Assembly (NCBI GenBank): GCA_010909165.1
Contig: MU008155.1
Location: 248,001-312,000 of the forward strand
DNA length: 64,000 nt
Direction of reading: 5' to 3'
Origin: Anthoceros angustus
Taxonomy: Eukaryota > Plantae > Anthocerotophyta
The notes under the pieces are model-generated. The model had not been told where the DNA came from. It worked only from the letters and a program-made list of their open reading frames with translations, and did no database searches. Positions 19,698 through 50,140 of the stretch are shown here, piece after piece. Each line of letters starts with the position of its first letter. Positions within the stretch are counted from its first letter, which is position 1. Position numbers and translations under genes: made by a program.

Positions 19698-22600
19698 TCC
19701 TCCCCACTAGGAAGAATCACGCCTCGGTGATAACCCGTGTAACGAGCAATCATCCAGAGCCTTTCGGATATCCTCTAATGTTACCCAAAGCGGTATTGAG
19801 ATCCACGCAACTTTACCATGTATTGTGGTAGAGTTCCACGTCTTAGCCACGCTACCTTGCAAGGAATTCTTCAATCTCCATGATCCTTGATCATCTTGCG
19901 AGGATCGTACTTCTTCCTGTCCATGTCCTCTTTCTCTTTGCCTGGCACAAATGGCTTCAGCATTGATACATGAAACACATTGTGTGCAAAAATCCAGTCA
20001 GGCAAGTCCAGCTTATAAGCGACTTCTCCAATGCGCTTCAAGACAACATAAGGACCTCCATACTTCGGCCTCAACTTTAGAGACAAACCTTGGGGCAGTG
20101 TGAAATGCTTCAATTTCACCCAAACCTTATCCCCAGTATTGAAGACAGTTTCTCTCCTTATCGATATCTCTTGGCGTGCTTGAGCCTTGGCTAATATCTT
20201 TTGGCAATCTCATGCCTAGCCTTCAAGCCTCAACAAATTGGCGTGGATCTCTGTGGTAGTATCGAAAACTTCAGCATTTAGCATGGATACTACATCCGGT
20301 GAGTTCCACTCATCTCAAAGGGACTATATCCCAGGAGCTATGTACGTGTTATTGTAACAAAACTCGCATCATCAAGATGATCAATCTCTCGATCAATGCA
20401 CATAGTGCCTCAAGTATTCTTCTTGGATTCGGTTGACTCGCTCATTGAGCCATCGATGTCTGGATGGTATGCGTACTCATGCATAATCGCACATTCAAAC
20501 TTCTCATCAAGTCTGCCAAAATTCTCCGTGAATCTTGGATCTCTATCACTCACAATGCCTGCGGGCAAGCCATGATACTTGTATACATACTTCTTGAACA
20601 AGTTGGCTGCCTCGAGCTCACTCGCTTCTTGGTGGGATGAAGTGCTTGTTTGGTGAACCTATCCACCACCGTCATGATAGTAGTAACCATTCTTTGGGAG
20701 GCAAAGGCATGATGAAGTCCATAGAAATACTTTTCCATGGCCCTCTTGGAATAGGTAGGGGCTGTAACAAACCTCTTGGTTTAGCCTGTTCTACCTTATT
20801 CTGCTGACAAACAGCACACGCGTTGACATAGTCTAATGTATCTTGATACATTCCTCGATAAAGCGACTTCTTCAACTTCTCATAAGTTGAATCACCTCCA
20901 CTGACGCAGCACATCATGACATTGAAAGCAACTTCTTCTTCAAGCCTACGAGTTAGGAATCACAACTCTCTTGTTTGTATATCAACAAACCATCTCGAGT
21001 TTGAACTTGCTTCCTTTCTCGCCACCCCATTCATCCGATCGCACTTGGATCTTGCGAGATAAGCTTCCTTAATCTCTTTGTGAGTATCCACAGGCTCAAT
21101 CACACTTGCCATTGCCTTATCCTGGCGACAAAAGACACATGCCTTGACATAGTCTAATGTATCTTGATACATTCCTCGATAAAACACTTCAACTTCTCAT
21201 AAGTTGAATCACCTCCACGGTGACGCACTTGGCACATCATGACATTCAAGTAACTTCTTCTTCAAGCCTACGAGTTAGGAATCACAACTCTCTTACATTT
21301 GTATATCAACAAACCATCTACGAGTTTGAACTTGCTTCCTTTCTCGCCACCCCATTCATCCGATCCACGCCGGATCTTGCGGATAAGCTTCCTTAATCTC
21401 TTTGTGAGTATCCAGGCTCAATCACACTTGCCATTGCCTTGATCCTTGACTCTTTTGCGACTCAACGATCAACCTTATTCTCCTTTCCGGTTTGTATTTA
21501 GTCACATCATACATAGCTAGGAATCACGCCATCTAGCTTGTCTGCATTCAACTTCTGGTTGGAAGTATGTTGTCGATATTATCGATATAGCACAAAAGAC
21601 CTACCAAGAGATAGTGCCTCCAAGCCTTGACAATGAATGGCGGCGGTCATTTCCTTCTCATAGGTGGGATACTTCATCTCATAAGGATGCAACTTCCTTG
21701 ACTCAAAAGCTAATGGCTTTTGGTCACATCAAAACTCCACCTATAGCCATGTCCGAGGCATCACAATACACTTCTACATCTTTCTTGGGGTCATACATTC
21801 CCAACAGGAGTAGTACTCAACTTCTCTTCAAGTATTCAAAGGTGCTTGACAATCAGATCCCACTTCCAAGCTTTTGATGTCTTCAAGAGGTCGATTATGG
21901 GGCTGCTATCTTAGCAAACATATGTACAAACCTCACATACCACGAAGCCAAACCCATAAAGCTCGTACCTCATGAATGTTAGGAGGTGCCAATCTTGAAT
22001 GGCTTTAACTTTATCGGGATCCATCACGATGCCCTCGAGAGACAATAAAACCTAAGAATGGAATCTCTGTCTTGGAAATCACACTTCTTGATTGCCAAGA
22101 ACAAAGAATTCTCTCTTAGCTTTTGTAACACTTCTCTTAAGTGTTGACATGTTCCTCAAGGTATGGCTAAAGATCAAAATGTCATCCGGATAGATTACAA
22201 CACACTTGTCCACGGATCTATGAATATAGTATTCATAAGTGTATCGAAATGTGGCGGTGCATTAGTAAGTCCAAATGGCATGACCAAATTCAAAAGCCCC
22301 ATACAGTCCTACAAATGTTTTGTACTCATGCCCTCGGCAATCACGATCGATAGTACCACCGCCATCGGATCCACTTGGTGAAATACTTGGCACCCTTCAA
22401 CTCAACATATCATCCATTCTAGGCAAAGGATATGCATTCTTGATTGTAATCGATTCGAGCTCGTAATCCACATGTCCTCCATTCTTTTTGCGCGTGAACA
22501 ATACAGGCGCACCAAAAGGAGACTTAGAAACTCTGACATATCCCTTTGCCAGCGGTTGGATAGTTGTCGCTTGAGTTCTTGCAACTCATCCTGACAATCT

Positions 22601-35777: not shown

Positions 35778-38223
35778 ATGGATGCAGCGGTTAAAACTGT
35801 GAGATCAGGCTGGGCTGCTGCTGCTTCTCCCGCGGCCTCCACTTCGCATCATCACAGGCTACAGGAGCTGCCAACGCCGGCGCCTTCGCTAAGAAGCAAG
35901 GAGATTCCGCACTTTCTGACCCCGGCCCCGGGCCAGCTATCCACGTCTTCCAGACATAGGACCTGGGTTGGAGATGGACGACTGCAGCAGGACTGCACCT
36001 CCCCGCAGGTTTGTGCCTGCACTTGCTCTTCAGCTGATTACAGGCTCGGGAACTGGTTAGAACACGATCTCGGCGCCAGCTTCTCGCCATTTTCTCGACA
36101 CCGGCACCACACATGTTCTCCATGCCTTCCAGGCAGATGCAGGCCAGATCTCTTCTCCAATTCAGCCTCCACTGATGGCTACGTCTCACACAACCGGACG
36201 CAACAAGAGCTCAAGACACCAGCCAACCGCGTTGCCCCAGCTCGTGAGGTGGTCAAGGATGCGCCTCCTCCTCGGGCTTACACTGGCAAGGTCAATGGGA
36301 CCAGCAACAGCAAGGCTGATCAGCAGCTGCACAATGGAGGTCCTGGACTGCACGCCGGTGCCGGAAGCTACGCAGGCGGCATCATTCCTCCTCCCTCGCC
36401 ACAAGCGCAGAAGCCTCTCACCAATTTTCTTGCCACTCTAGCCACTGTCATACTGGCCGTGGAAAAGCAGAGACGGGCAGATGAGGCAGCCCGGAGGACA
36501 CAGGTCTCTATCGATTCCTTGCGAAGGGGTCGTCTGGTGGATAACGACCTTGTCTATCGACAGCAGTTTGTCATACGATCTTACGAGGTCTCCTATGACA
36601 GAACTGCTTCTATCGAGACCCTGACCAACCTGTTTCAGGTGTGATATCATGCCTGTACCTGTAGAAGCTGTACTAAGATGTTGGCCTTTCTACACTCATT
36701 CATGACATGTAAGTGTCACGTTTATCAGCATGTATGTCAAATCTCATGCTCCTGCTAAGTGGAGTGGTTGTGGAAATGTATGGAAATCGCCCTTCTCTGC
36801 AGGAAACAGCCTTGAATCATGTAGGAATGTCGGACTTTGTTGGGGATGGAATGGGCACAACTCATGCCATGATGCGCCACAGGTTGATATGGGTCGTTAC
36901 CAGGATGCACATCGAGGTTGATCGCTATCCTGTATGGTAAGTGTTCTGCCAAGCCAAATGTTTCAGCCTTCTTTTTTTTATCTTTGGAATTGTGGCGTGT
37001 GGAATTTTATCTTTAAGTTGAAGCTTTGGAGTTGACGGTGGGCTCTCCAACTTATGCAGGGGGGATGTCGTTGAGATTGATTCATGGGTTTGTGGAGCTG
37101 GCAAGAATGGTATGCGTCGTGATTTTCTTGTCAGCGATTACGCAACCGGCAACATTCTAGCTCGCGCAACCAGGTACTTGAGCTGTTCCCGCTCTGTCTT
37201 ATCTTGTGCACGAGCTCCAGCAACAGGCGAGGTTTTCGTTTCTTCTCGTGCTATCACGTGCCTACCACGTCCCTGAAAAATCTGAGAGAGTACCTGAGAT
37301 TTTGATGTGGCTGAGCCGGTGAACACAGTACCTGGGTCATGATGAATCAAGACACGAGAAGACTATCAAAGATGCCAGACGATGTTAGGGCTGAGATTTC
37401 CCCCTACTTCCTGGATCGATCAGTGCTGGAAGATAAGCCAACACAGAAAATTCCCAAGCTGGACGACTCTGCACCATACATACGCTCTGATCTTGTGGTG
37501 AGCTTGTTTCGAAACACTTCAAATTTCCGCTCCTTGGCTTGGATGATACAACGAAGTGAGGTTTTCCCCTCACTCGATGGCCGTTCTACTTGTATGCAGC
37601 CACGTCTAAATGACATGGATATGAATCAGCATGTGAACAACGTCAAGTACATCGGATGGGTTCTTGAGGTGATGGCCCTTTGTCTAGAGACCAGTGAGTG
37701 GTTGTGGATTGTATACATTGTTGTGTGTTTGTGTGGCTGACTGGCACACTGAATCGTTGTGGTGCAGAGTGTCCCGCAATCTCTCCTGGTGGCACATGAG
37801 TTGACCAGCATGATTCTGGAATACAGGCGAGAATGCAGCCACTCAGATGTTGTTCAGTCCATGACATGCCCTGAACCAGAGCCATCTTCCACATCGCAGC
37901 GTCCTGGCACTTCTGGAACAAATGGGGCTTTAAATGGTTCGGCAAATGGGGCTTTGAACGGTTCGGCAAATGGGGCTTTGACTGGTTCGGCAAATGGGTC
38001 TTTGAATGGTTCGGCAAACGGGTCTGCAAATGGTTCTGTGAACGGTTGTGCCAAGGGTTCAACCAATGGTTCAGTAAATGGCCACAAGTCCAGCTTGCCC
38101 AGTCAACCATCCAGAAGCTCGGGCCATGTGCAGTATACTCACCTTCTACGCATGCAGTCTGATCTTTCAGAAATTGTGCGAGGAAGAACAGTCTGGAGAC
38201 TCAAGGGACGCTACATTCAGTAG
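35778..38223 (+). CDS. FATB: Plastid acyl-ACP thioesterase, FATB-like (multi-exon)
   Basis: FLATLATVILAVEKQ, YRQQFVIRSYEV, ETALNHV, IWVVTRMHIEVDRYP, TWVMMNQDTRRL, catalytic DMNQHVNNVKYIGWVLE, LEYRREC and EIVRGRTVW. Confidence 0.92.
37921..38082 (+). repeat. In-frame 24-nt tandem repeat encoding NGALNGSA-type octapeptides inside FATB
   Basis: AATGGGGCTTTAAATGGTTCGGCA-like units, about 6-7 copies decaying rightwards. Confidence 0.9.
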
Positions 38224-38763: not shown

Positions 38764-39732
38764 ATGGATGCGGAAGAAAAGCTTCCCGCAATTCCTGAGC
38801 AACGGACAGTCTTTCTGGTAACATGCTTTCTTTCGTTGTGCCGCTGCGAGATCTGTTGTTCTTTCCACAGGCAATTCCAAGACTTAATGCTCGGGGTTGG
38901 TGTTTTAGGTGAACACATACGTTGTGCATACCGTGCAGCTTTTGAACAAGTTCTCAGCAATCTGCGAGCAGAAGCTTGCCGAAGTTCATAGGTATGTCGA
39001 GCTACTCATCCAAGGTTGCCCTGGTACCATGGCTTTAATGAGGCGTGGTTGCGGCTGCTTGATCTGCTGCAGAAGGGTTCAGAGGCTGGATGCCACCGTC
39101 ACACTTTTAGAGGCCAAGCTGAGAAGTGCTGAGGACGCTGATGGACCAGGCCAGGCATCTGCCCTTGACGTTACCACGCTGGCTGGTATCGGTCATGGAC
39201 CGGAGCAGCCTCTGGAGTCAGCTGAGGATGCTAGTCTCCATCTTGGGTAGTTTCGACACATGCCACTGCTGCAGCTGCGGCCTCAGGAAGCAATTAACAA
39301 TATTTCCTTCTTTGTATGGCAGTGTGAAAGGCAGTCAGCAAGACGTAGTGGCCAGTCCATCGGCGTCATCGAGTGCATCAGAGCGGCATTCCCGTCCTAA
39401 GGTTAACCTGACCGACCTCACGCGGGCAGCTGATGGGGTTTTAGGGTTGCTTATTTCGTTTGTTGCTGGTGTGCTGGTGGACAGATGAAGGACGACCCAT
39501 CCTACTCACGATTTTTCAGAATGCTGCAAGTTGGGGTTCCTGAAAGGGTCAGTATGTGGACTGTGCGCAGCCTCACTTGCTTACAGGTGGAATACGAGGT
39601 TTCGTGGTTTGTTCAAGAGCTCTGATAGTTGCGTGCTTGCCGTTGTAGGCTGTGAAGTTGCAGATGTCAGCAGAGGGCTTCGAACCGTCGCTATTAGACG
39701 CCCCCGATGCCCTCTCACCAGGTGCTGTCTAG
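38764..39732 (+). CDS. WASHC3: WASH complex subunit 3 (CCDC53) homolog, about 5-6 short exons
   Basis: Spliced reading: MDAEEKLPAIPEQRTVFL|VNTYVVHTVQLLNKFSAICEQKLAEVHR|RVQRLDATVTLLEAKLRS...MKDDPSYSRFFRMLQVGVPER|AVKLQMSAEGFEPSLLDAPD. Matches both CCDC53 conserved blocks as I recall them. Confidence 0.85.
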
Positions 39733-40740: not shown

Positions 40741-41099
40741 TCAAATGCTGTATAGCACACACAGGTGAATGGTCAGTGCACACTTCTTTTGTTTGACAAG
40801 CAAACACGAGAAATTTTGAAGGGGGGAATATCCTCGATGGGGGTTTTTTGTGAATAAGCGCTGAAGGGGGTTGGTAATGGGTCTAAAAGCAGCGGTTTCA
40901 GATATTGTGTGGAAACTAGAGGGGAAAAAAGGGTTTGGCCCATAGATCATACCACTTTTCCGCAGTACATCTCGCCGCCGAAGGGTCTCCCTATTCCCAG
41001 ACCCGTTTGTTTCGGCCAAAACAAGACCCACAATGCACACCCTGTTTGCCGGTCGAGCAATACTGTTTTCTGTCATCTGCAAATCCAACGCCACTATGG

Positions 41100-43530
41100 A
41101 AGGGTATTGCAATCTCGCGGACAGGTTCAATCCATCATACATATTCGTGGGGAACAAAATTTCGTTTATCGTGCAGGTTTAATTTGTGATCCTTCACACT
41201 TTACCGGTACAGGATGAAAACAAGGGAGGGGGCGCCGGCTGATCGGCGCCCTTGCGCCTCTGTACAAGGGTACATTCAACATGTTTGCTATCCGCTTGGC
41301 CACCACTTCCTGGAGAATGACATAGAACAAGTCCCTGCAGTGGGGGAGTCATGTTGCATGTCGTGGTGTTTGAGACAAATTGTGTAAACTGCATATCTCA
41401 CGCAACATAATCACAGGACATAGTCCATCAATATTCACCAAAAGCAGTGGTACGTGTAACTCAATAAAATTTTCTTCAATTTGAACTCTAGTTATGTCGT
41501 CTGACAAGACCAAGAGAGGGTGGCCACCCTAGAGCCATCGAACTCGGTTTGGTTCTAGAGGATGGGCACAAGGGACAAATGAAGTGGGGACACACAAAAG
41601 AAGTCTCGTGTCGATCTATCCACCTTACAAGCTAAAATGAAGGCGGTTGGGCACGGCACCCATGACCGGGAAACCTTAACTCAGATACCCTCAACCGGCT
41701 GCTCCATACTACCCCTAACGACAATGGTTCAGTGGTCTTCTTCTGGACTCACATGAGTCCTCCGTAGTTCACGCCGTCATCACTTGGCTCAACAACATTA
41801 TCATATCGCTATCTTTTGCGATACTTTGACCGGGTTGGTCAGTATGAATCCTCGCAACTCGCTCAATTTGTCCCTGATCACCTTTTTGTACAAAAGGTCT
41901 TTGGTACGGGCACACCACCAACTTGTCTTGAGACATGTACACCTGCTTTTTCACCACAGTGTCATGTGCAATGACGGATCGTCCATTGTTAAAAGTCCCC
42001 TATGTAATATTGGGCGTCATAGCCGCCCTGGCTTCGAGCTGCCTTCCTTCACGCACCAGGCCACCGTTATGTACTCCACTGTCTCAAATCCACCCCTGTC
42101 ATTACTCATGTTCGTTTTGTCCCAAACGAAGGATACCATACCACCCTTGCCACATAATCCCCGCATGCACTCTCTCACGAGGTGAGCTTCTTCCACTCCG
42201 TGCATGACAATGAGCCTGAATTCGTCCGCCGCTCTTGGAAGCTTTGGAAAATCAGCTCATGCCCTCATCCAACCTATCCATGGGACCAATGTCAAAGCCT
42301 CTTGGGACATCCATAACCGAAGGGTATTGCAATCTAGCGTTCAATCCATCATACATATTCGTGGGGAACAAAATTTCGTTTATCGTGCAGGTTTAATTTG
42401 TGATCCTTCACACTTTACCTGAGGATGAAAACAAGGGAGGGCGCCGGTCTTTCACCTCTAAGGGTACATTCAACATGTTTGCTATCCGCTTGGCCACCAC
42501 TTCCTGGAGAATGACATAGAACAAGTCCCTGCAGTGGGGGAGTCATGTTGCATGTCGTGGTGTTTGAGACAAATTGTGTAAACTGCATATCTCACGCAAC
42601 ATAATCACAGGACATAGTCCATCAATATTCAGCCAAAAACAGGTGGTACGTGCAACGGTCATTGCAGCTTCTTCAATTTGAACTCTAGTTATGTACGTAC
42701 AGCGACAAGACCAAGAGGGGGCGCCGGCTGACCGGCACCCTAGAGCCATCGAACTCGGTTTGGTTCTAGAGGATGGGCACAAGGGACAAATGAAGTGGGG
42801 ACACACAAAAGAAGTCTCTGACTGGCTGTCAGTCTATCCACCTTACAAGCTAAAATGAAGGCAGTTGGGCACCGGCACCCATGACCTGGGAAACCCTAAC
42901 TGCATACCCTCAACCGGTGCCGTTCCATACTACCCCTAACGACAATGGTTCAGGCTGGTCTTCCTGGACTCCACAGCTAGTCCTCCCCAGAGTTCACGCC
43001 TTCGTCATCACTTGGCTCAGCGTCAACAACATTGTTATCGCTATCTTTTGCGATACTTTGACTGGCTGGCTGTATGAATCCTCGCAACTCGCTCAATTTG
43101 TCCCTGATCACCTTTTTGTACAAAAGGTCTTTGGTACGGGCACACCACCAACTTGTCTTGAGACATGTACACCTGCTTTTTCACCACAGTGTCATGTGCA
43201 ATGACGGATCGTCCATTGTTAAAAGTCCCTATGTAATATTGGGCGTCATAGCATGCTTGCCTTCCTTCACGCACCAAGCAGTTATGTACTCCTTTTGTCT
43301 CAAATCCACCCTGTCATTACTCATGTTTGTTTTGTCCCAAGCGAAGGATACCATTCCACCCTTGCCACATAATCCCCATGCACTCTCTCACGAGGTGAGC
43401 TTCTTCCACTCCGTGCATGAGCTGAATTCTTCATGTCGTCTTCTCTTGGAAGCTTTGGAAAAGCGTGCTCATGCCCTCATCCATCTATCCATGGGACCAA
43501 TGTCAAAGCCTCTTGGGACATCCATAACGA
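41100..43530. repeat. Tandem duplication, unit about 1.22 kb (41100-42319 / 42320-43530)
   Basis: Co-linear repeat of AGGGTATTGCAATC...GGGACATCCATAAC. The junction falls at the MTase DVPRG motif. Confidence 0.85.
41750..42320 (-). pseudogene. N6-adenine/N4-cytosine DNA methyltransferase fragment, copy A (5'-truncated duplicate of copy B)
   Basis: VMDVPRGFDIGPMD, LIVMHGVEEAHLVRECMR, VSFVWDKTNMSNDRGGFETVEYITVAW and VVCPYQRP. Confidence 0.6.
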
Positions 43531-43900
43531 GAAGGTATAAGCCCGTGTCAAGGAACGCATCTCCATAATGTTTCTTTTTCCACTTGATAGTAACATTCTT
43601 TCTCGCACTCGGAACAATGTGAAATGCCCTTCTCTCAAATCTGTCATTGCACGCCGCTCATCCTCAAGACTCTTCCAGCTTGTTAATCTCAAATATAAAG
43701 TTCTTGAAATCCTCGCAACTTTTGCAAATTCTCCACATCCTTTATGCCTGTCAAGAAAAACGTTAGAGCAGGACACCATTCCTATTGTATTCCACAACAA
43801 GGAGACGTTGCGAGGAGGGTGAAGGTCAGACCGCACGGCCCACGCCGCCATCGTGGTTCAGCCATGCCCCAACACGAGGGGCGGCCCGCCGGCCACTGGT
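42977..43900 (-). pseudogene. Beta-class amino-methyltransferase domain, copy B
   Basis: LLVMDVPRGFDIGPMD, MVSFAWDKTNMSND, EYIT.W, CPYQRP, then LYKKVIRDKL in a shifted frame. The motif X/I segment is missing. Confidence 0.62.
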
Positions 43901-44499
43901 GGTAGAGCAGGTCGGCCTACAGCGCCGGCCACCGCGCCCGTGACATGTGCAGCCGCATCCAAACAATCGAGTGGGAGGCCACGCACGGCCCCCACTATTC
44001 CTTCTTTAGACGTGAGCCGCCACCGCCCTAAGCAAAAACTAAAGTAAAACATTGTTAGGGTTTGGATCTCACCTTCCCAAAGAAAAGCCGCTTTGAAACC
44101 GAGCAATCATGTCGTCTGCTGAGTGTAGAGGATATTCCTTCCTCACTTCCTCGAAGATGAGCATCCAAATGTTTAGCCATGGCCACTTGATAATATGCGC
44201 TTTCTTGAAGTAATTTCGCCTCCATTCCTTTGAGATCGAGGATGCTCGCCAATACCTTCCTTGTTGTGAACAAGAATCGTTGTCCACATTCATCGTATAC
44301 CCCGGAATGATTTCGTGGTTTCATGAGCATGTCTTTCGCTTGAAATACACTGCTTCATGCTTGGGATCATATGACTTTCCTTTCCTTCCCTTTTTCTTGG
44401 TGCCGCAGTATGTGCTTCTTCCGCCTGTGTAACGCCCGCTTCCCACTTTGAAAAGATCTTATCAATATTATCCCATACCTTGCCCTCACCTTGAGATGC

Positions 44500-45340
44500 A
44501 CAATATGTGTGTCACATTATCCACTTTGTTACCTTGTACGTAATCTTCGTGACCTTCATCATCTTCAATTAATCCAAGAACCTTATAAGATTGAACTTCC
44601 ATGACATGGTCATCACACTCCATCCGGCCGCAATAAGAAGCTCATCCGTAAATATCTTACACTGTTCAATAAAAGACATTTTCTTCATCGGACATTGTGT
44701 TATGGTCGGTTGCAAGAACTCTCATCTCGGCACCGTAAGCCCCGGTATACATGCGCTTCAAAGCAGGACTTCCCGAACAATATCAGTGCTTCATAGCGAC
44801 ATATGTGTGGTTCCCCCAAGTACACCCATAATATATTTCTTGGCCACGAATTTCTTGGTCCAACTTGCTAATATCGTTGCACTCCCGGGGTCATCATGAT
44901 GGCGGAATGCCTTCTTCAATCCTTCCCTTCAAAATAACTCGGGCTAAGTAGTTTGCCCTCGTCCACCCTCTGATTTGGGCATCTGGTGTAATATAAGATG
45001 CGGGCTTCAAATTCTCAAGCTTTACCAATACTGTCTCCGGAACAACTTTCTTTGAATATGCAGAGTCCCTGATTCTTGTCAATGGGTCTGATTCCCGAAT
45101 GGCATCTTCAAGTCTTTCCTCATCTGTCCGCACATGGACAGTCGCTATGTTATCCTGATGGGCTTCACTCCCTGTATCCTTCTTGGACTTTTTCTTTCTC
45201 TTTGTGGAGCCTCGCTCTGTGATGGTACTATGACTGTTGCCGTTCCCACCATGCCTTCCTTTCCCACTCGAGTCCCCTGTCTCCATACCCTCGGATCTGG
45301 CGGATACTGCAGGGCCTTCAATGGGACCTCTCGCCCACAC
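44500..45340 (-). pseudogene. ParB/Srx-like domain upstream of, and co-oriented with, MTase copy B
   Basis: VLVKLENLKPASY...QIRG; GVLGG plus NHTYVAMK joined across a one-G homopolymer frameshift; then AHVYRGL, EMRVLATDHN and MSFIEQCK. Preceded by acidic and basic (KRKKKSKK) tracts. Confidence 0.55.
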
Positions 45341-46603
45341 GCTCGTCCACGTCTCTGTGCATGGCGTGTCAGGCTTGCCGGCCCCAACCCTTGATGTGCC
45401 TTAGGGAACCCGAGCAGTTGGGTGCAGTGTGGTCTCAACACCACGATCGCCCGGGGGCCATAGTTGGAACCTCCATTGAGGAGCCAGGAAATGGTATGTC
45501 TAACAACGGAGCATCCCTACCCTCCTCTGGCTCTTGAAAGTCCTCATCATTAGAGTGGCCAAGCACGTCGGGTATACGCCCATCCTCCTCATCAGATGGG
45601 CCGAGTTTACTATCTGCACTTCGCTGGTCGTCATTGAGCCCATCTTGGACACTCTGTCAAAGCTGGGCTCTGACTCGGCGTTGGGACATTTCCCTCCTAT
45701 GCTGGATAACAGATTCCGTAATCTTCCCGCATATGGTGCCCTTGCTTGCTGAGCATCCTGCAAAACATACAAAGGGTGGAGGAAAGGCAAGAAAGAATCC
45801 ATATGTTTTAGAAACCAACATACCACGATCTGCATCAAGGGACTTGAAAACCTTGTTAACAATTCATACTTACAGTTAACACCATAATATTCATACCGGC
45901 GGAATAATGTAAGCCGGTTATGAAAAAATTGCCGCCGCTTGGTACTTTTCATACAGTTACTAATTCACGACAAACACCGCTCTTCGAAAGCACCTGCGCC
46001 TGTGCCAAGCAATCATTCAGATTGGGATTTCAATTTTGTCTCCAAGTTGTTTGAAATGAGGGTGCTAAGGTGCAGGGATGCTGCCTGCGAAACGGCAATG
46101 CTCAGTTATAAGTAGAGTACGTCCGTTCAGATATATTCAAAATAGGCCTCATGGCGGACACATAACAATCTTGGAAGATCCGGGATGCGGCAACTCAAAA
46201 CGAGCACTCGACGGTGCGATAACGAAAATGTTTTGGCCACCTAAGGAAGTTCGAGATCCGAAGATTCAAGCGCACACAAAGCTACACTATCGGAACTAAG
46301 GTCACGTTTCTAAGGCGTTCTTTATGCGCCTCTCCGAAAGTGTCAACATCCATCATCGCGGCGTCATCATCTTCCTTCGTCAACGAGGTTGAGTACCATA
46401 TAGCGTCGATTGTGCTGCCCTCATCGAGAGGGTCTCGATCCTTTCTTTCATTCTCTTGACCCTAGCACAATTTGAGCCTTCCCAATATCCTTCGCTCACG
46501 CAAACCTCCTTGGCCCAGGTGAGATGGACCTCGGATGCGGCTCGTGTGTCGGCTCCTCCTCCGCAGCGTGCCATATCCATGTACATCTTTGTGGAATGAA
46601 TTA

Positions 46604-47263
46604 CGCACATGCATCCAATATCCATTCCCTTCCTTGGAGAATGTCTTGATAAGCTTCATCATCAAACCTAAAGGCCATAGGGTAGGCGGACAACAAGTTT
46701 GTCAAGTGAATGGTATACCGACTTTTTCAGCGTATGGTGGGCAATCATCGACCGACCATCATTGAAAGTGCCATGCAAAGCATTAGGTAACATGACAGCC
46801 CGCAACTCGAGCTTTTCTTGAGACCAACCGACAATGACATACTCCACGTGTCGAACCCACCCTTGTCGTTGTTGACATTTGTCTTGTCCCACACAAATGA
46901 AACAAGTCCACGCCTCTGGCACCACTTCCGCATAGGCTCCTGCACAATATGTGAATCTTCCACACCATGCATTATGATCATCCCAAATCCTCGCATTCGA
47001 TTAAGTATTGGAAGGAATGCAAAACATTACCACTTGCCAAGCATCAAACCTTCCATCCTTAGGGCCCTTATCGAATCCACGTGGGACATCCATCACAAGC
47101 AAAGAGTACCTCCTCTTCCTCACAAAACCTTGCATATCCCGGACATCTCGAGCATGAATGACATCGCACTTTTTCTCCGATGGATGGAATTGCAATCCCT
47201 CTTCTATGTCCCTATCTGCGAGCTCCGTTGCTCATCCTTCAAGCCCTTCCATGTGTTGACCTC
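46604..47263 (-). pseudogene. Beta-class N6/N4 DNA methyltransferase domain, copy C (diverged paralog, most complete motif set)
   Basis: DVIHARDVRDM...YSLLVMDVPRGFD (motif IV, 47090-47076), LVSFVWDKTN...HVEYVIVGW, then PLGLMMKLIKTFSKEG.WILDACA (motif X to start of motif I). Motif order IV-VIII-TRD-X-I matches the N6_N4_Mtase family. Confidence 0.7.
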
Positions 47264-47841
47264 ATAAATAAAGCTGAAAGTTTGCGTGGTACTTGGTGAG
47301 GACAATGTCTTTTGTTGCTGCACAAAAAGCAGGTTGTTTGTCGATTAATGGGAGAGGGACTTCAGCATGCCCTCCCGCAATAGGGCCTCCGGGTTTGTAG
47401 GCATGATGCGCCAGCAAGCGGAATATGGAAAATCGGGCGTGGGGAAGGAGGAAGGAAGAACAACATAATATTTTAAGCGGTGAATATACATCAAGCGACT
47501 TTTCGTGAATATCTGGCGAAGCAGGGGTTTCGATGGGCATTGAAATGCGTATTCATGCGAAGACCCTAAACACGCCGTAAGTGACACACCTAGGCGCGGC
47601 ATGCGGCGCCAAGTCATCTTAAGCGTTACGTGGCTTGGGCGCGCATGCCGGCATCCAAGATTCATGGCCTTTGGCAATGAATCTTTGGACGTCGGACAAA
47701 CACCCTCCTTCCGAAACTACCTAAGCTAATGGCTTCTTTGGCTCAACATCATTAGACACCTAGGCTAGTGGCTAAGAAACCACAGGTGATGGCTTCTCGG
47801 ATGGCTATTAAAACAAGGAGCATGGGGGCATAAGGGCATGA

Positions 47842-47873
47842 AGAAGAAGAAGAAGAAGAAGAAGAAGAAGAAG
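47842..47873 (+). repeat. (GAA)n microsatellite
   Basis: About 10 GAA units directly visible. Confidence 0.9.
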
Positions 47874-47974
47874 GGCGCATGAGCATGCCACGCCCTCACA
47901 TATAGTTTGTGCTTCCAATTGGTTGTGTGCAAGAAAGTTAATGAAGTGGTAACACTCGAAAGTTATGAACAAGA

Positions 47975-48115
47975 GGTCTTGGGTTCAAGTCTTCTTTTAA
48001 GGCGGCATGCCAGCGCCCTTTTTAAAACTTTCTTGGGTTCAAGTCTTCTTTTAAGGCGCATGCGCGCCCTTTAAAAAAAACTTTCCTTGGGTTCAAGTCT
48101 TCTTTTAAAGGCATG
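47975..48115 (+). repeat. Three tandem copies of an approximately 50-bp unit (TCTTGGGTTCAAGTCTTCTTTTAAGGCGGCATGC...)
   Basis: Directly visible. Confidence 0.8.
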
Positions 48116-49889
48116 CTTTAAAATAAACTTTCCCTATTGTGTAGGCTTTAAAGGTAGCTTTTCCTATTGTGTCGAATAGATAATGTGGATTGAAATGAGA
48201 GCCTGATAAAAGTGATAGATGATTGGTTTGGTTTAAAATTCCCTTATCTTTTCCTTTGATAGCACTAATCCATGAAGAAGGTGGGACTCGACAAGTACAA
48301 AACACACACCACCACATGCAAGCGGCAATTGCATTCCATGATTTCGAGAAGATGGAAGCAGGGACTCTCACCTGCATGTTGAATTTCCATTGTCATCTCC
48401 AATACTTATTACACCCCCTAAAACCGTTTTCCAAAACCATATACCCTTTATGTCTTGAATGAATAGCAAAGGCCTATCCGTGGCCTCTTCGCCACCAGCA
48501 GTGTCATGTATGGGCATCATTTCAAGGTAAATGTGTGCCTACCGAGGCTGTATATCCCCTTTTCAGCCCAACTCATGGCATGTTCCCGGCTTCCTACACA
48601 CATAGCAACCGTACTTTTAAAACATTTTTTGTGGAAACTGGCAGGAACAGGGGTTTCGTGCCCATGTTCCCGCCGGTTACCAGTATATTCATTGGAAAAG
48701 CCGCTTCCTGTTTATTCCGACGGTATGAATATTATGGTGTTAGTTGGCTGACGCATAGCATTTCTGAAAGCCTCCACCAGGTTTGGAGGACTACATTTCT
48801 TGCTTTGGAAGCCATGTAGGCTAACCTCATAAGCCTTGTACATGGTTTCGTCTTCAATTATCCGATCAAACACCAAAGGCTTTGTTGTGCAGAGCATTTG
48901 AAACACATCCATATCCACAGTCGCCCACATAACAACTTAGTACTGGAAGATCCGGGATGACAGCAACTCCAAAGACAGCGCCCCCTACGACATACAGTGC
49001 ACAGTAACACGAAAATGTTTAGGGGGGGGGCATACCGGGAGACGATGTGAATCGCGGCGAAGAGGATATGGTGGAGGATGACAGCGCGTGGTAAAGTCAC
49101 GTGCTGGGAGACATCGCCAAAGGTGCTTCATCTGCTGAGAGCAACGCCGACCGGCAAGCGCCGTCATGCTCGCTCAACGTCCTGGGTCTTTCTCTGGGTT
49201 ACTCTCCACTTCGAACTGAGAGTAGAACGCCCCATTCGGGTGACATCATATGCATGTGCTGGTAACCCTAACCATAATTGTCCATTAAAGCAATGGTTAC
49301 ATGGAAGTCCATTTAGAGGACTCTAGGTCAAAAGCCGTACATGGCAATAACAATGCCGAGAAAACAATGAAGAGGCGTTGTGCCGCGCAGCCGACAAGAT
49401 CTACCGGTGCAGATCCTTCGGCATATTTGCTCATAATGTCATTTCAATGTTTTTGGGCGGGCCTACTCATGTCACAAAGCAGTAATCGGGATGAGGGAGC
49501 ACAGATTTGTGATACAGAGAAAGCGGAGTCCTAAAGCCGGCGACAATGTTGCGCGCCACACACACATCAGACGTCGAAGAGGTCAGTCTTTTTCGTCAAT
49601 GAAGTTCATTGCGCACTTCATTTATACGTTCTGAAGGAACATGCACTTCAGAACAAGTGTTCGGTATGCAACATTCTCAGCGGCTCTGTTCTGTCGATGT
49701 AATGTTGTGTCCTTGATGTTGTTGTAGCGGGAACAGTGTGAGGAACAGGGGTCTTTTGATTTCCAGATGGCAGGAGACTCTTCTGTAAGGGGCCGTAGGA
49801 TGGCTGTGTTGAATGGGGCCCTCGCGCCCTTCCTGATCATGACCTCCGAAAACGAGTCCGAACTCCAGAAGCCCTACTAGAAATGGGCA

Positions 49890-50140
49890 CCCTATGTTAC
49901 ACTTTATGTTAAGATTTGGACCCCTGGATGTAACACTCATGTTGCAATTTTGGGGTCATGTAACACTTTTTGGGCCCCTTGTTACACTTTGGCTTGGAAA
50001 CCATACCACGGTCGTTGTTGCAATCATGTTGCAATGGTGTTGCAATTATGTTAAGATGAAGTGAGAGGTGGTTTTGCCTCTCAAAATTGCAACATGATTG
50101 TAACATCTAAAGTGTTACAAGAGAGGTCTTGTAACACTTT
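49890..50140. repeat. Cluster of TGTAACAC/TGTTACAC/TGTTGCAA motifs in both orientations (DNA-transposon subterminal-like)
   Basis: About 12 motifs within 250 bp. Confidence 0.6.

Follow-up and report, generated by a model that had tools for sequence, protein, structure and literature searches.

The stretch of DNA analysed here (the window) comprises 64,000 nucleotides (nt) of the genome of Anthoceros angustus (contig MU008155.1 of assembly GCA_010909165.1, positions 248,001 to 312,000). Its minus strand holds, at 42980-45952 in the numbering of the window, a gene-like element, here called copy B, which is very likely the remnant, no longer functional, of a repeated gene that was probably carried by a transposon, and which is accompanied by two partial copies, A and C. 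On the evidence of profile comparisons, it can be regarded as established that the C-terminal half of the encoded protein descends, at the superfamily level, from the beta-class (PF01555, N6/N4) amino-methyltransferases of the bacterial and phage kind. An earlier reading made from the letters alone (the sequence-only reading) had described the locus, at 42977-46000, as a candidate intron-containing fusion of a ParB/Srx domain with a DNA methyltransferase, probably borne by a mobile element, that could write N6-methyladenine (6mA) or N4-methylcytosine (4mC). The extent given there covers the main gene, but omits a tandem duplicate at 41099-42317 and copy C at 46612-47344. The parts of the relic and of its relatives are the following.

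42980-45952, minus strand: copy B, a full-length decayed gene, which leads from an N-terminal region through a ParB-like block and a linker to a methyltransferase-like domain (three-frame reading).
45758-45873, minus strand: intron-like stretch GTAAGT...TTTTGCAG, a candidate only, from reading the sequence.
45498-45632, minus strand: acidic tract DDQRSADSKLGPSDEEDG...EEGRDAPLLD, in a frame different from that of the start open reading frame (ORF).
45176-45202, minus strand: Lys-rich tract KRKKKSKKD, resembling a nuclear localization signal (NLS).
44617-45046, minus strand: ParB-like block, five pieces across frames, whose identity is without statistical support.
43741-44616, minus strand: linker, without a match in family searches, containing a 45-nt GT..AG stretch (44028-44072).
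42980-43740, minus strand: methyltransferase-like domain of copy B, nine in-frame blocks (composite and hhalign versus PF01555).
42319-43528: tandem duplication unit 2 (upstream on the minus strand), from blastn.
41099-42317: tandem duplication unit 1, made of copy A and downstream flank.
41843-42326, minus strand: copy A, which repeats the methyltransferase-like region between VMDVPRGFD and ..RGFI and contains two stops and three frame changes.
46612-47344, minus strand: copy C, a diverged methyltransferase-like relic without a ParB-like part, with at least four frame changes.

Copy B starts with an ATG at 45952-45950 of the minus strand and is a pseudogene, interrupted by many frameshifts and stops. 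The longest stop-free stretch within the whole gene measures 168 codons (44897-45400), and no stop-free piece spans a domain. The peptide strings quoted in the sequence-only reading are all found on the minus strand near the places assigned to them, but they are spread over different frames and do not form one reading frame. Reading through the ParB-like block requires at least three frame changes and crosses two stops; its pieces lie at 44909-45046 (VVPETVLVKLENLKPASY.., where the string LENLKPASY..QIRG is located), 44812-44919 (LKKAFRHHDD..GVLGG), 44786-44812 (NHTYVAMKH), 44699-44782 (..VLATDHN) and 44617-44691 (PMKKMSF..AAGWS), all on the minus strand. At least six frame changes are needed in the methyltransferase part, where the equivalent of motif IV, LLVMDVPRGFD, is at 43502-43534, FAWDKTN at 43325-43345, CPYQRP at 43125-43142 (EYITAW is also present), and the equivalent of motif I, RGFIQPASQSIAKD, at 43043-43084. 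The acidic and NLS-like tracts that had been described are indeed present. As to the two proposed introns, the GTAAGT and the other end of the first (45873-45758) can be read as reported, but if it is spliced out in the frame set by the ATG at 45952, T and GA come together as a stop, whereas without splicing the frame is open across the same stretch (ORF 45500-45952). The second, the 45-nt candidate at 44072-44028, has GT..AG ends, but no other support.

The assignment of the C-terminal half was obtained with composites, in which the in-frame blocks of each copy were joined with an X at every break. The composites of copies A, B and C align with each other as protein over about 200 residues, and the three-copy composite was compared by hhalign with two sets of targets, namely E. 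coli K-12 YhdJ with 80 related viral loci, and the methylase of the Wolbachia phage WOVitA1 together with relatives from viruses (71) and bacteria (80). Ten of the viral targets were verified as PF01555 by Pfam (E 1e-37 to 1e-48), and the WOVitA1 methylase was read by Pfam as ParB_N plus N6_N4_Mtase; in the viral loci whose N-terminal extensions are long, Pfam detected no ParB domain. Against the close orthologues of YhdJ, a weak profile made of near orthologues only, hhalign returned P 0.13; against 54 diverse sequences, P 0.011. For the clade of ParB-fused phage enzymes the value was P 1.4e-4, which became 1e-4 with the enlarged clade. When all 93 viral PF01555 sequences were used, the match covered 165 columns with Prob 85%, E 6e-6 and a score of 47.4. 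Shuffling the columns of the query gave a mean score of 14.7; the standard deviation (sd) was 2.5-2.8, and the highest shuffle scored 23.4. In the comparison with the score of 47.4, the sd was 2.5 and the maximum 22.9, which places the observed score about 13 sd above the shuffles. The observed scores were not attained by any of 200 shuffles in one series or of 80 in another. The amino-methyltransferase block of the sequence-only reading is thereby upheld.

The same register of motifs was found in every run: LLVMDVPRGF falls on the DPPY strand, FVWDKTN on I.W.K.N, and CPYQRP on HPTQKP. After CPYQRP, a helix aligns with LL.RII, and a segment with GD.VLDPF.GSG. The domain therefore has the permuted order, that is motif IV, then the HPTQKP-like element, then the equivalent of motif I. 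A 79-residue piece (42020-42256) was also placed in a protein-language-model atlas, where PF01555 accounted for 88 of its 100 closest named clusters, with a score of 0.88; this placement is no more than a lead. Block alignments run through two metagenome scans gave nothing useful, and tblastn of the 93 methyltransferases against the window gave noise only.

The relationships between the copies show that the family once evolved under coding constraint, and that copy B was already inactive when part of it was duplicated. Copies A and C, compared over 155 codons, share 54% identical residues, while synonymous differences are saturated (pS 0.85) and non-synonymous differences amount to 0.32 (pN); therefore, these lineages diverged under coding constraint. 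For copies A and B, synonymous divergence (dS) is 0.11 and non-synonymous divergence (dN) 0.087, a ratio of 0.79, and the two are in neutral decay. Copy A belongs to a tandem duplication whose units, 42319-43528 and 41099-42317, are 87.2% identical over 1270 columns (blastn), with repeat families D1-D9 spaced by about 1211-1230. On the minus strand, the duplicated unit 41099-42317 begins exactly at motif IV (between ..YPS and VMDVPRG), and includes about 700 bp of downstream flank. A TAG stop after ..PNIT is common to copies A and B, and copy C, which lies directly upstream of copy B, has CAT at this position. Because the TAG is common to A and B, the gene was dead before the duplication, which affected about 1.2 kb with the 3' portion of the methyltransferase region.

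That the relic belongs to a larger family is seen from sequencing runs. When runs were searched with the relic as query, none was returned; the host genes next to it led to one sample with a DNA run (92% of the sampled words) and an RNA run (59%). The DNA run, from the same organism, yielded 76 short contigs on 41400-47399, of which 23 had at least 99% identity to the window, 20 had 95-99% and the remaining 33 had 90-95%. The presence of three bands of identity means that many diverged copies exist; this is a multi-copy family, and therefore probably a mobile one. Over 44400-45000, each 200-bp bin has a summed word depth of 120-170, with single sites reaching about 310; elsewhere the depth is at most 60 (0-60 in the methyltransferase and N-terminal parts). 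Either a more abundant derivative family contains the segment 44400-45000, or most of the family differs by more than 10% from the other parts of this copy.

Most contigs differ from the window by 1-nt insertions or deletions (indels) at 44586, 44646, 44813, 44927 and 44930, and those at 44813 and 44927/44930 coincide with the sites where frame changes had been placed; in the region of copy C, contig indels occur at 46941-47196. Since the majority of the contigs are free of these indels, copy B carries damage that most of its family does not. In a second organism, a 4.5-kb contig has four short matches, colinear and similarly spaced: three correspond to blocks c, b and a of the methyltransferase, and the fourth lies immediately upstream of block a. 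The family is therefore not confined to one organism. Support from RNA, which had been proposed as a check on the gene, was looked for at the locus, and both RNA runs were without a contig on 41400-47399, though one of them holds the neighbouring host genes.

The motifs themselves bear on what the family could do. Copies A, B and C, all pseudogenes, read D-V-P-R-G-F where the PF01555 family has (D/N/S)PP(Y/F/W). At the position of motif I (F-x-G-x-G), which binds S-adenosylmethionine (AdoMet), in the segment aligned with GD.VLDPF.GSGTT, copy B has RGFIQPASQS and copy C has NGYWMHVRNSF, with no glycine loop in either; copy A diverges after RGFI at this point (RGFILTNPVKV). Although these readings are taken from decayed copies, the non-canonical motifs look like a family trait rather than a product of decay, because the lineages of B and C are separated by saturated synonymous change. 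The writing of 6mA or 4mC, which had been suggested for the locus, appears doubtful even for intact relatives, judging from a motif IV that reads DVPRGF and a motif I that lacks glycines in two old lineages.

It should be noted that several results weigh against the interpretation of the locus as a probably transposon-carried relic of a methyltransferase-like gene, or bear on its possible ParB part. Of the two families named in the sequence-only reading, PF01555 is matched by the composite in hhalign, but PF02195 is unsupported, and single stop-free pieces have no Pfam match to either or to any other family, for PF01555 even at E 10. Single pieces are likewise without a match in PHROGs, in the sequences of the PDB (for which three-row profiles were also used) and in tblastn against phages, and phmmer of the 79-residue piece against 1.84 billion representatives returned one spurious repeat protein only. 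The frames of the composites were picked by eye, guided by the conservation between copies and not by the methyltransferase family. Identity to the phage enzymes is just 12-15%, and the assignment is therefore made at the level of fold or superfamily. The ParB assignment had no statistical support in any test run. Within 33-52.5 kb, no transposase domain was found by Pfam, a search that a decayed or non-Pfam transposase would escape, and in the same interval no long inverted pair brackets the relic and no terminal repeats or target duplication were found. The multi-copy family makes a mobile element probable, and the term transposon-carried is drawn from copy number and from the literature. 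Finally, contigs show presence and not absence, so that the silence of copy B is not proven.

For the middle block of copy B, we lean towards a ParB origin, and the alternative, a methyltransferase-like gene whose middle block is not ParB and whose motifs are a chance resemblance, is less probable but of appreciable weight. The alternative draws on the negative searches: the block has no match in Pfam, PDB, phage tblastn or a word-index protein search, and the atlas gives no ParB lead. In hhalign, its composite reaches P 0.11-0.28 with the ParB-methyltransferase families of phages, a result matched or surpassed by 8 of 60 shuffles; a ParB_N model of 99 sequences gives -1.1 bits in hmmsearch, a value equalled or exceeded by 441 of 2000 shuffles. 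The ParB/Srx assignment of the sequence-only reading was thus no better than shuffles wherever it was put to a statistical test, in tests of low power, the query being one broken sequence. In addition, the GxxR(xR) box is without its arginine, the candidate site being GVLGG-NHTYVAMK (GGNHTY). On the other side, the spacing RHHDD..ILASW..GG-NH..VAMK..VLATDHN is near to RTHSD..IAASI..AGHGR..AARK..VIADN of the phage ParB-methyltransferases, a likeness seen by eye and post hoc, and the block lies upstream of the methyltransferase part, an order that would correspond to the phage fusions if the ParB reading is right (also a post hoc reading). Moreover, the methyltransferase composite scores best against the ParB-fused clade of phages, and a fusion of this kind has been published for algal transposon cargo.

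The remaining explanations concern the gene as a whole or its catalytic half. A functional, intron-containing ParB-methyltransferase fusion, able to mark DNA with 6mA or 4mC, is very improbable. The motif strings do come in the expected order, and GT..AG signals resembling those of introns are there; however, such a gene would have to be read across many frame changes and stops, its first intron would splice to a stop, and it left no RNA contigs. The neutral divergence of copies A and B, a common stop older than the duplication, the family contigs that mostly lack the indels, and the non-canonical motifs IV and I all speak against it, and contradict the working fusion gene of the sequence-only reading. 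A different possibility, to which we assign a small probability, is that the MT-A70 enzymes (METTL3/IME4-like, DPPW), and not PF01555, are the branch from which the domain comes. The order of motifs in that branch, DPPW-like, ..lflWvtn, ..iiW.K and ..HS.KP, resembles the LLVMDVPRGF, FVWDKTN, EYITVAW and CPYQRP of the relic, and the domain is compact; this is a lead only. However, the atlas neighbours are PF01555 and not PF05063, the hhalign match to PF01555 is significant over 165 columns, and no piece has a PF05063 match in Pfam or any match in the PDB, which holds METTL3, METTL14 and METTL4. Chance open frames in repeat DNA, with no gene at all, would agree with the fact that single pieces match nothing, but this explanation is refuted by the conservation of the protein between copies in spite of saturated synonymous sites, and by the hhalign score in comparison with the shuffles; its probability is practically nil.

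The decayed, repeated gene that we favour would have encoded a protein with an acidic and Lys-rich N-terminus, a middle block that may have been a DNA-binding one of the ParB type, and a C-terminal descendant of the beta-class amino-methyltransferases. Intact relatives may bind DNA or AdoMet instead of methylating. Copy B was inactivated first; a 3' segment of about 1.2 kb, which begins at motif IV and reaches into the flank downstream, was then duplicated in tandem. An older relic of the same domain lies just upstream. As it stands, copy B does nothing.

Two host genes neighbour the relic. Pfam was run on stop-free segments of at least 75 residues in 33-52.5 kb, and on segments of 40-74 residues in 39.25-41.1 kb and 47.35-50.25 kb; it found in 33-52.5 kb only the two genes listed here.

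36713-38220, plus strand: acyl-ACP thioesterase (exons 36.7-38.2 kb).
38909-39247 and 39434-39622, plus strand: exons of CCDC53, a subunit of the WASH complex.

The cluster of relics lies in intergenic DNA, convergent with CCDC53, and the host genes are just downstream of its 3' end. A contig from a distant relative (Logan SRR33208241) also has the thioesterase and CCDC53 on the same strand as each other, but their order is reversed and the methyltransferase relic is missing. Within the region of the thioesterase gene there is a 24-bp/12-bp tandem array (37919-38081).

Upstream of copy C, at 47840-48172, a (GAA)11 run and two tandem arrays with periods of 54 and 30 were observed, without a protein-family match. 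The sequence at 48712-48742 is a 31-nt inverted copy, 97% identical, of 45877-45907, the start of the first ORF of the relic; it lies 2.8 kb upstream, and there is no homology beyond it. A further observation concerns 49.88-50.14 kb, which is dense in short inverted motifs: in the interval 49880-50140, TGTTGCAAT/ATTGCAACA occurs five times exactly and TGTAACAC/GTGTTACA four times. Exact TGTTGCAAT is absent elsewhere in the window, and TGTAACAC occurs once more, at 22124. The cluster has no partner in the window, and could represent subterminal binding sites of a transposon or an array of the red-algal type near ParB-domain cargo.

Among the nearest known systems is the Ectocarpus element Sola1-1_Ec32, which carries, opposite to its transposase, a gene for a 1104-residue protein with a ParB-like part and an N4-cytosine/N6-adenine (N4C/N6A) methyltransferase (Dinatale et al. 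2025, PMC12477816). Its authors propose that the cargo binds and marks its own element (PMC12477816). In both cases a repeat-borne eukaryotic gene has an N4C/N6A methyltransferase domain of the prokaryotic kind downstream of a putative ParB-like domain. However, the Ectocarpus gene is intact, transcribed and contained in a 21.5-kb element, whereas the gene described here is a partly duplicated, dead copy with plant-type host genes as neighbours; no transposase was found within about 10 kb of it, and its ParB part is unproven. The red alga Bostrychia offers another comparison: in its Plavaka transposons, PAG3 is a cargo with a ParB-like part and a 2-oxoglutarate (2OG) oxygenase, adjacent to inverted-repeat arrays (bioRxiv 10.1101/2025.02.11.637652). 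PAG3 is thus also a ParB-like cargo fused to a nucleic-acid-modifying fold, but differs in the fold of the enzyme and in the transposon superfamily; its arrays are next to the gene, and a cluster of short inverted motifs, putatively comparable, lies at 49.88-50.14 kb in the present window.

On the phage side, the clade of the WOVitA1 'putative DNA methylase' (HQ906662, 404 residues) is the best-scoring single target family (hhalign P 1e-4), and the order of domains would be the same if the ParB reading is right. Phage enzymes of the ParB_N plus N6_N4 type, however, keep DPPY and a glycine-rich motif I, whereas the relic family has DVPRGF and no glycines, at an identity of 13-15%. In the plant gene, unlike in the phage enzymes, the N-terminal and linker regions are long and of acidic and basic character. 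According to Iyer et al. (PMC4738411), there are methyltransferase clades of eukaryotes that go back to ParB-terminase loci of phages, and chlorophytes have fusions of ParB with helix-turn-helix (HTH) domains. Marchantia DN4MT1a/b and bdelloid rotifer N4CMT (PMC8885841) are also eukaryotic recruits of prokaryotic amino-methyltransferases; DN4MT1 has a canonical TSPPY motif, and its description does not mention ParB (bioRxiv 10.1101/2021.02.12.428880). These are single or tandem host genes, which are expressed and make 4mC, whereas the relic is repeat-borne, dead and has DVPRGF.

Putting the family beside the algal elements, one could imagine it as a land-plant branch of the ParB-methyltransferase transposon cargo of algae, in which the methyltransferase fold has turned into a pseudo-enzyme whose motifs were kept by purifying selection in lineages whose age is shown by saturated synonymous sites, and which shields or recognises the DNA of its element instead of writing 6mA or 4mC. 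We consider this scenario, drawn from motif comparison, speculative and on the whole rather unlikely.

One more dead copy has little weight alone, and annotators should treat such loci as pseudogenes. The profile evidence indicates that the repeated family to which it belongs descends from the beta-class amino-methyltransferases, and the presence of DVPRGF and of a glycine-free motif I in two old lineages argues against assuming that such cargo writes 6mA or 4mC. The literature consulted describes cargo of this kind only for algae; a plant host would therefore extend its known range.

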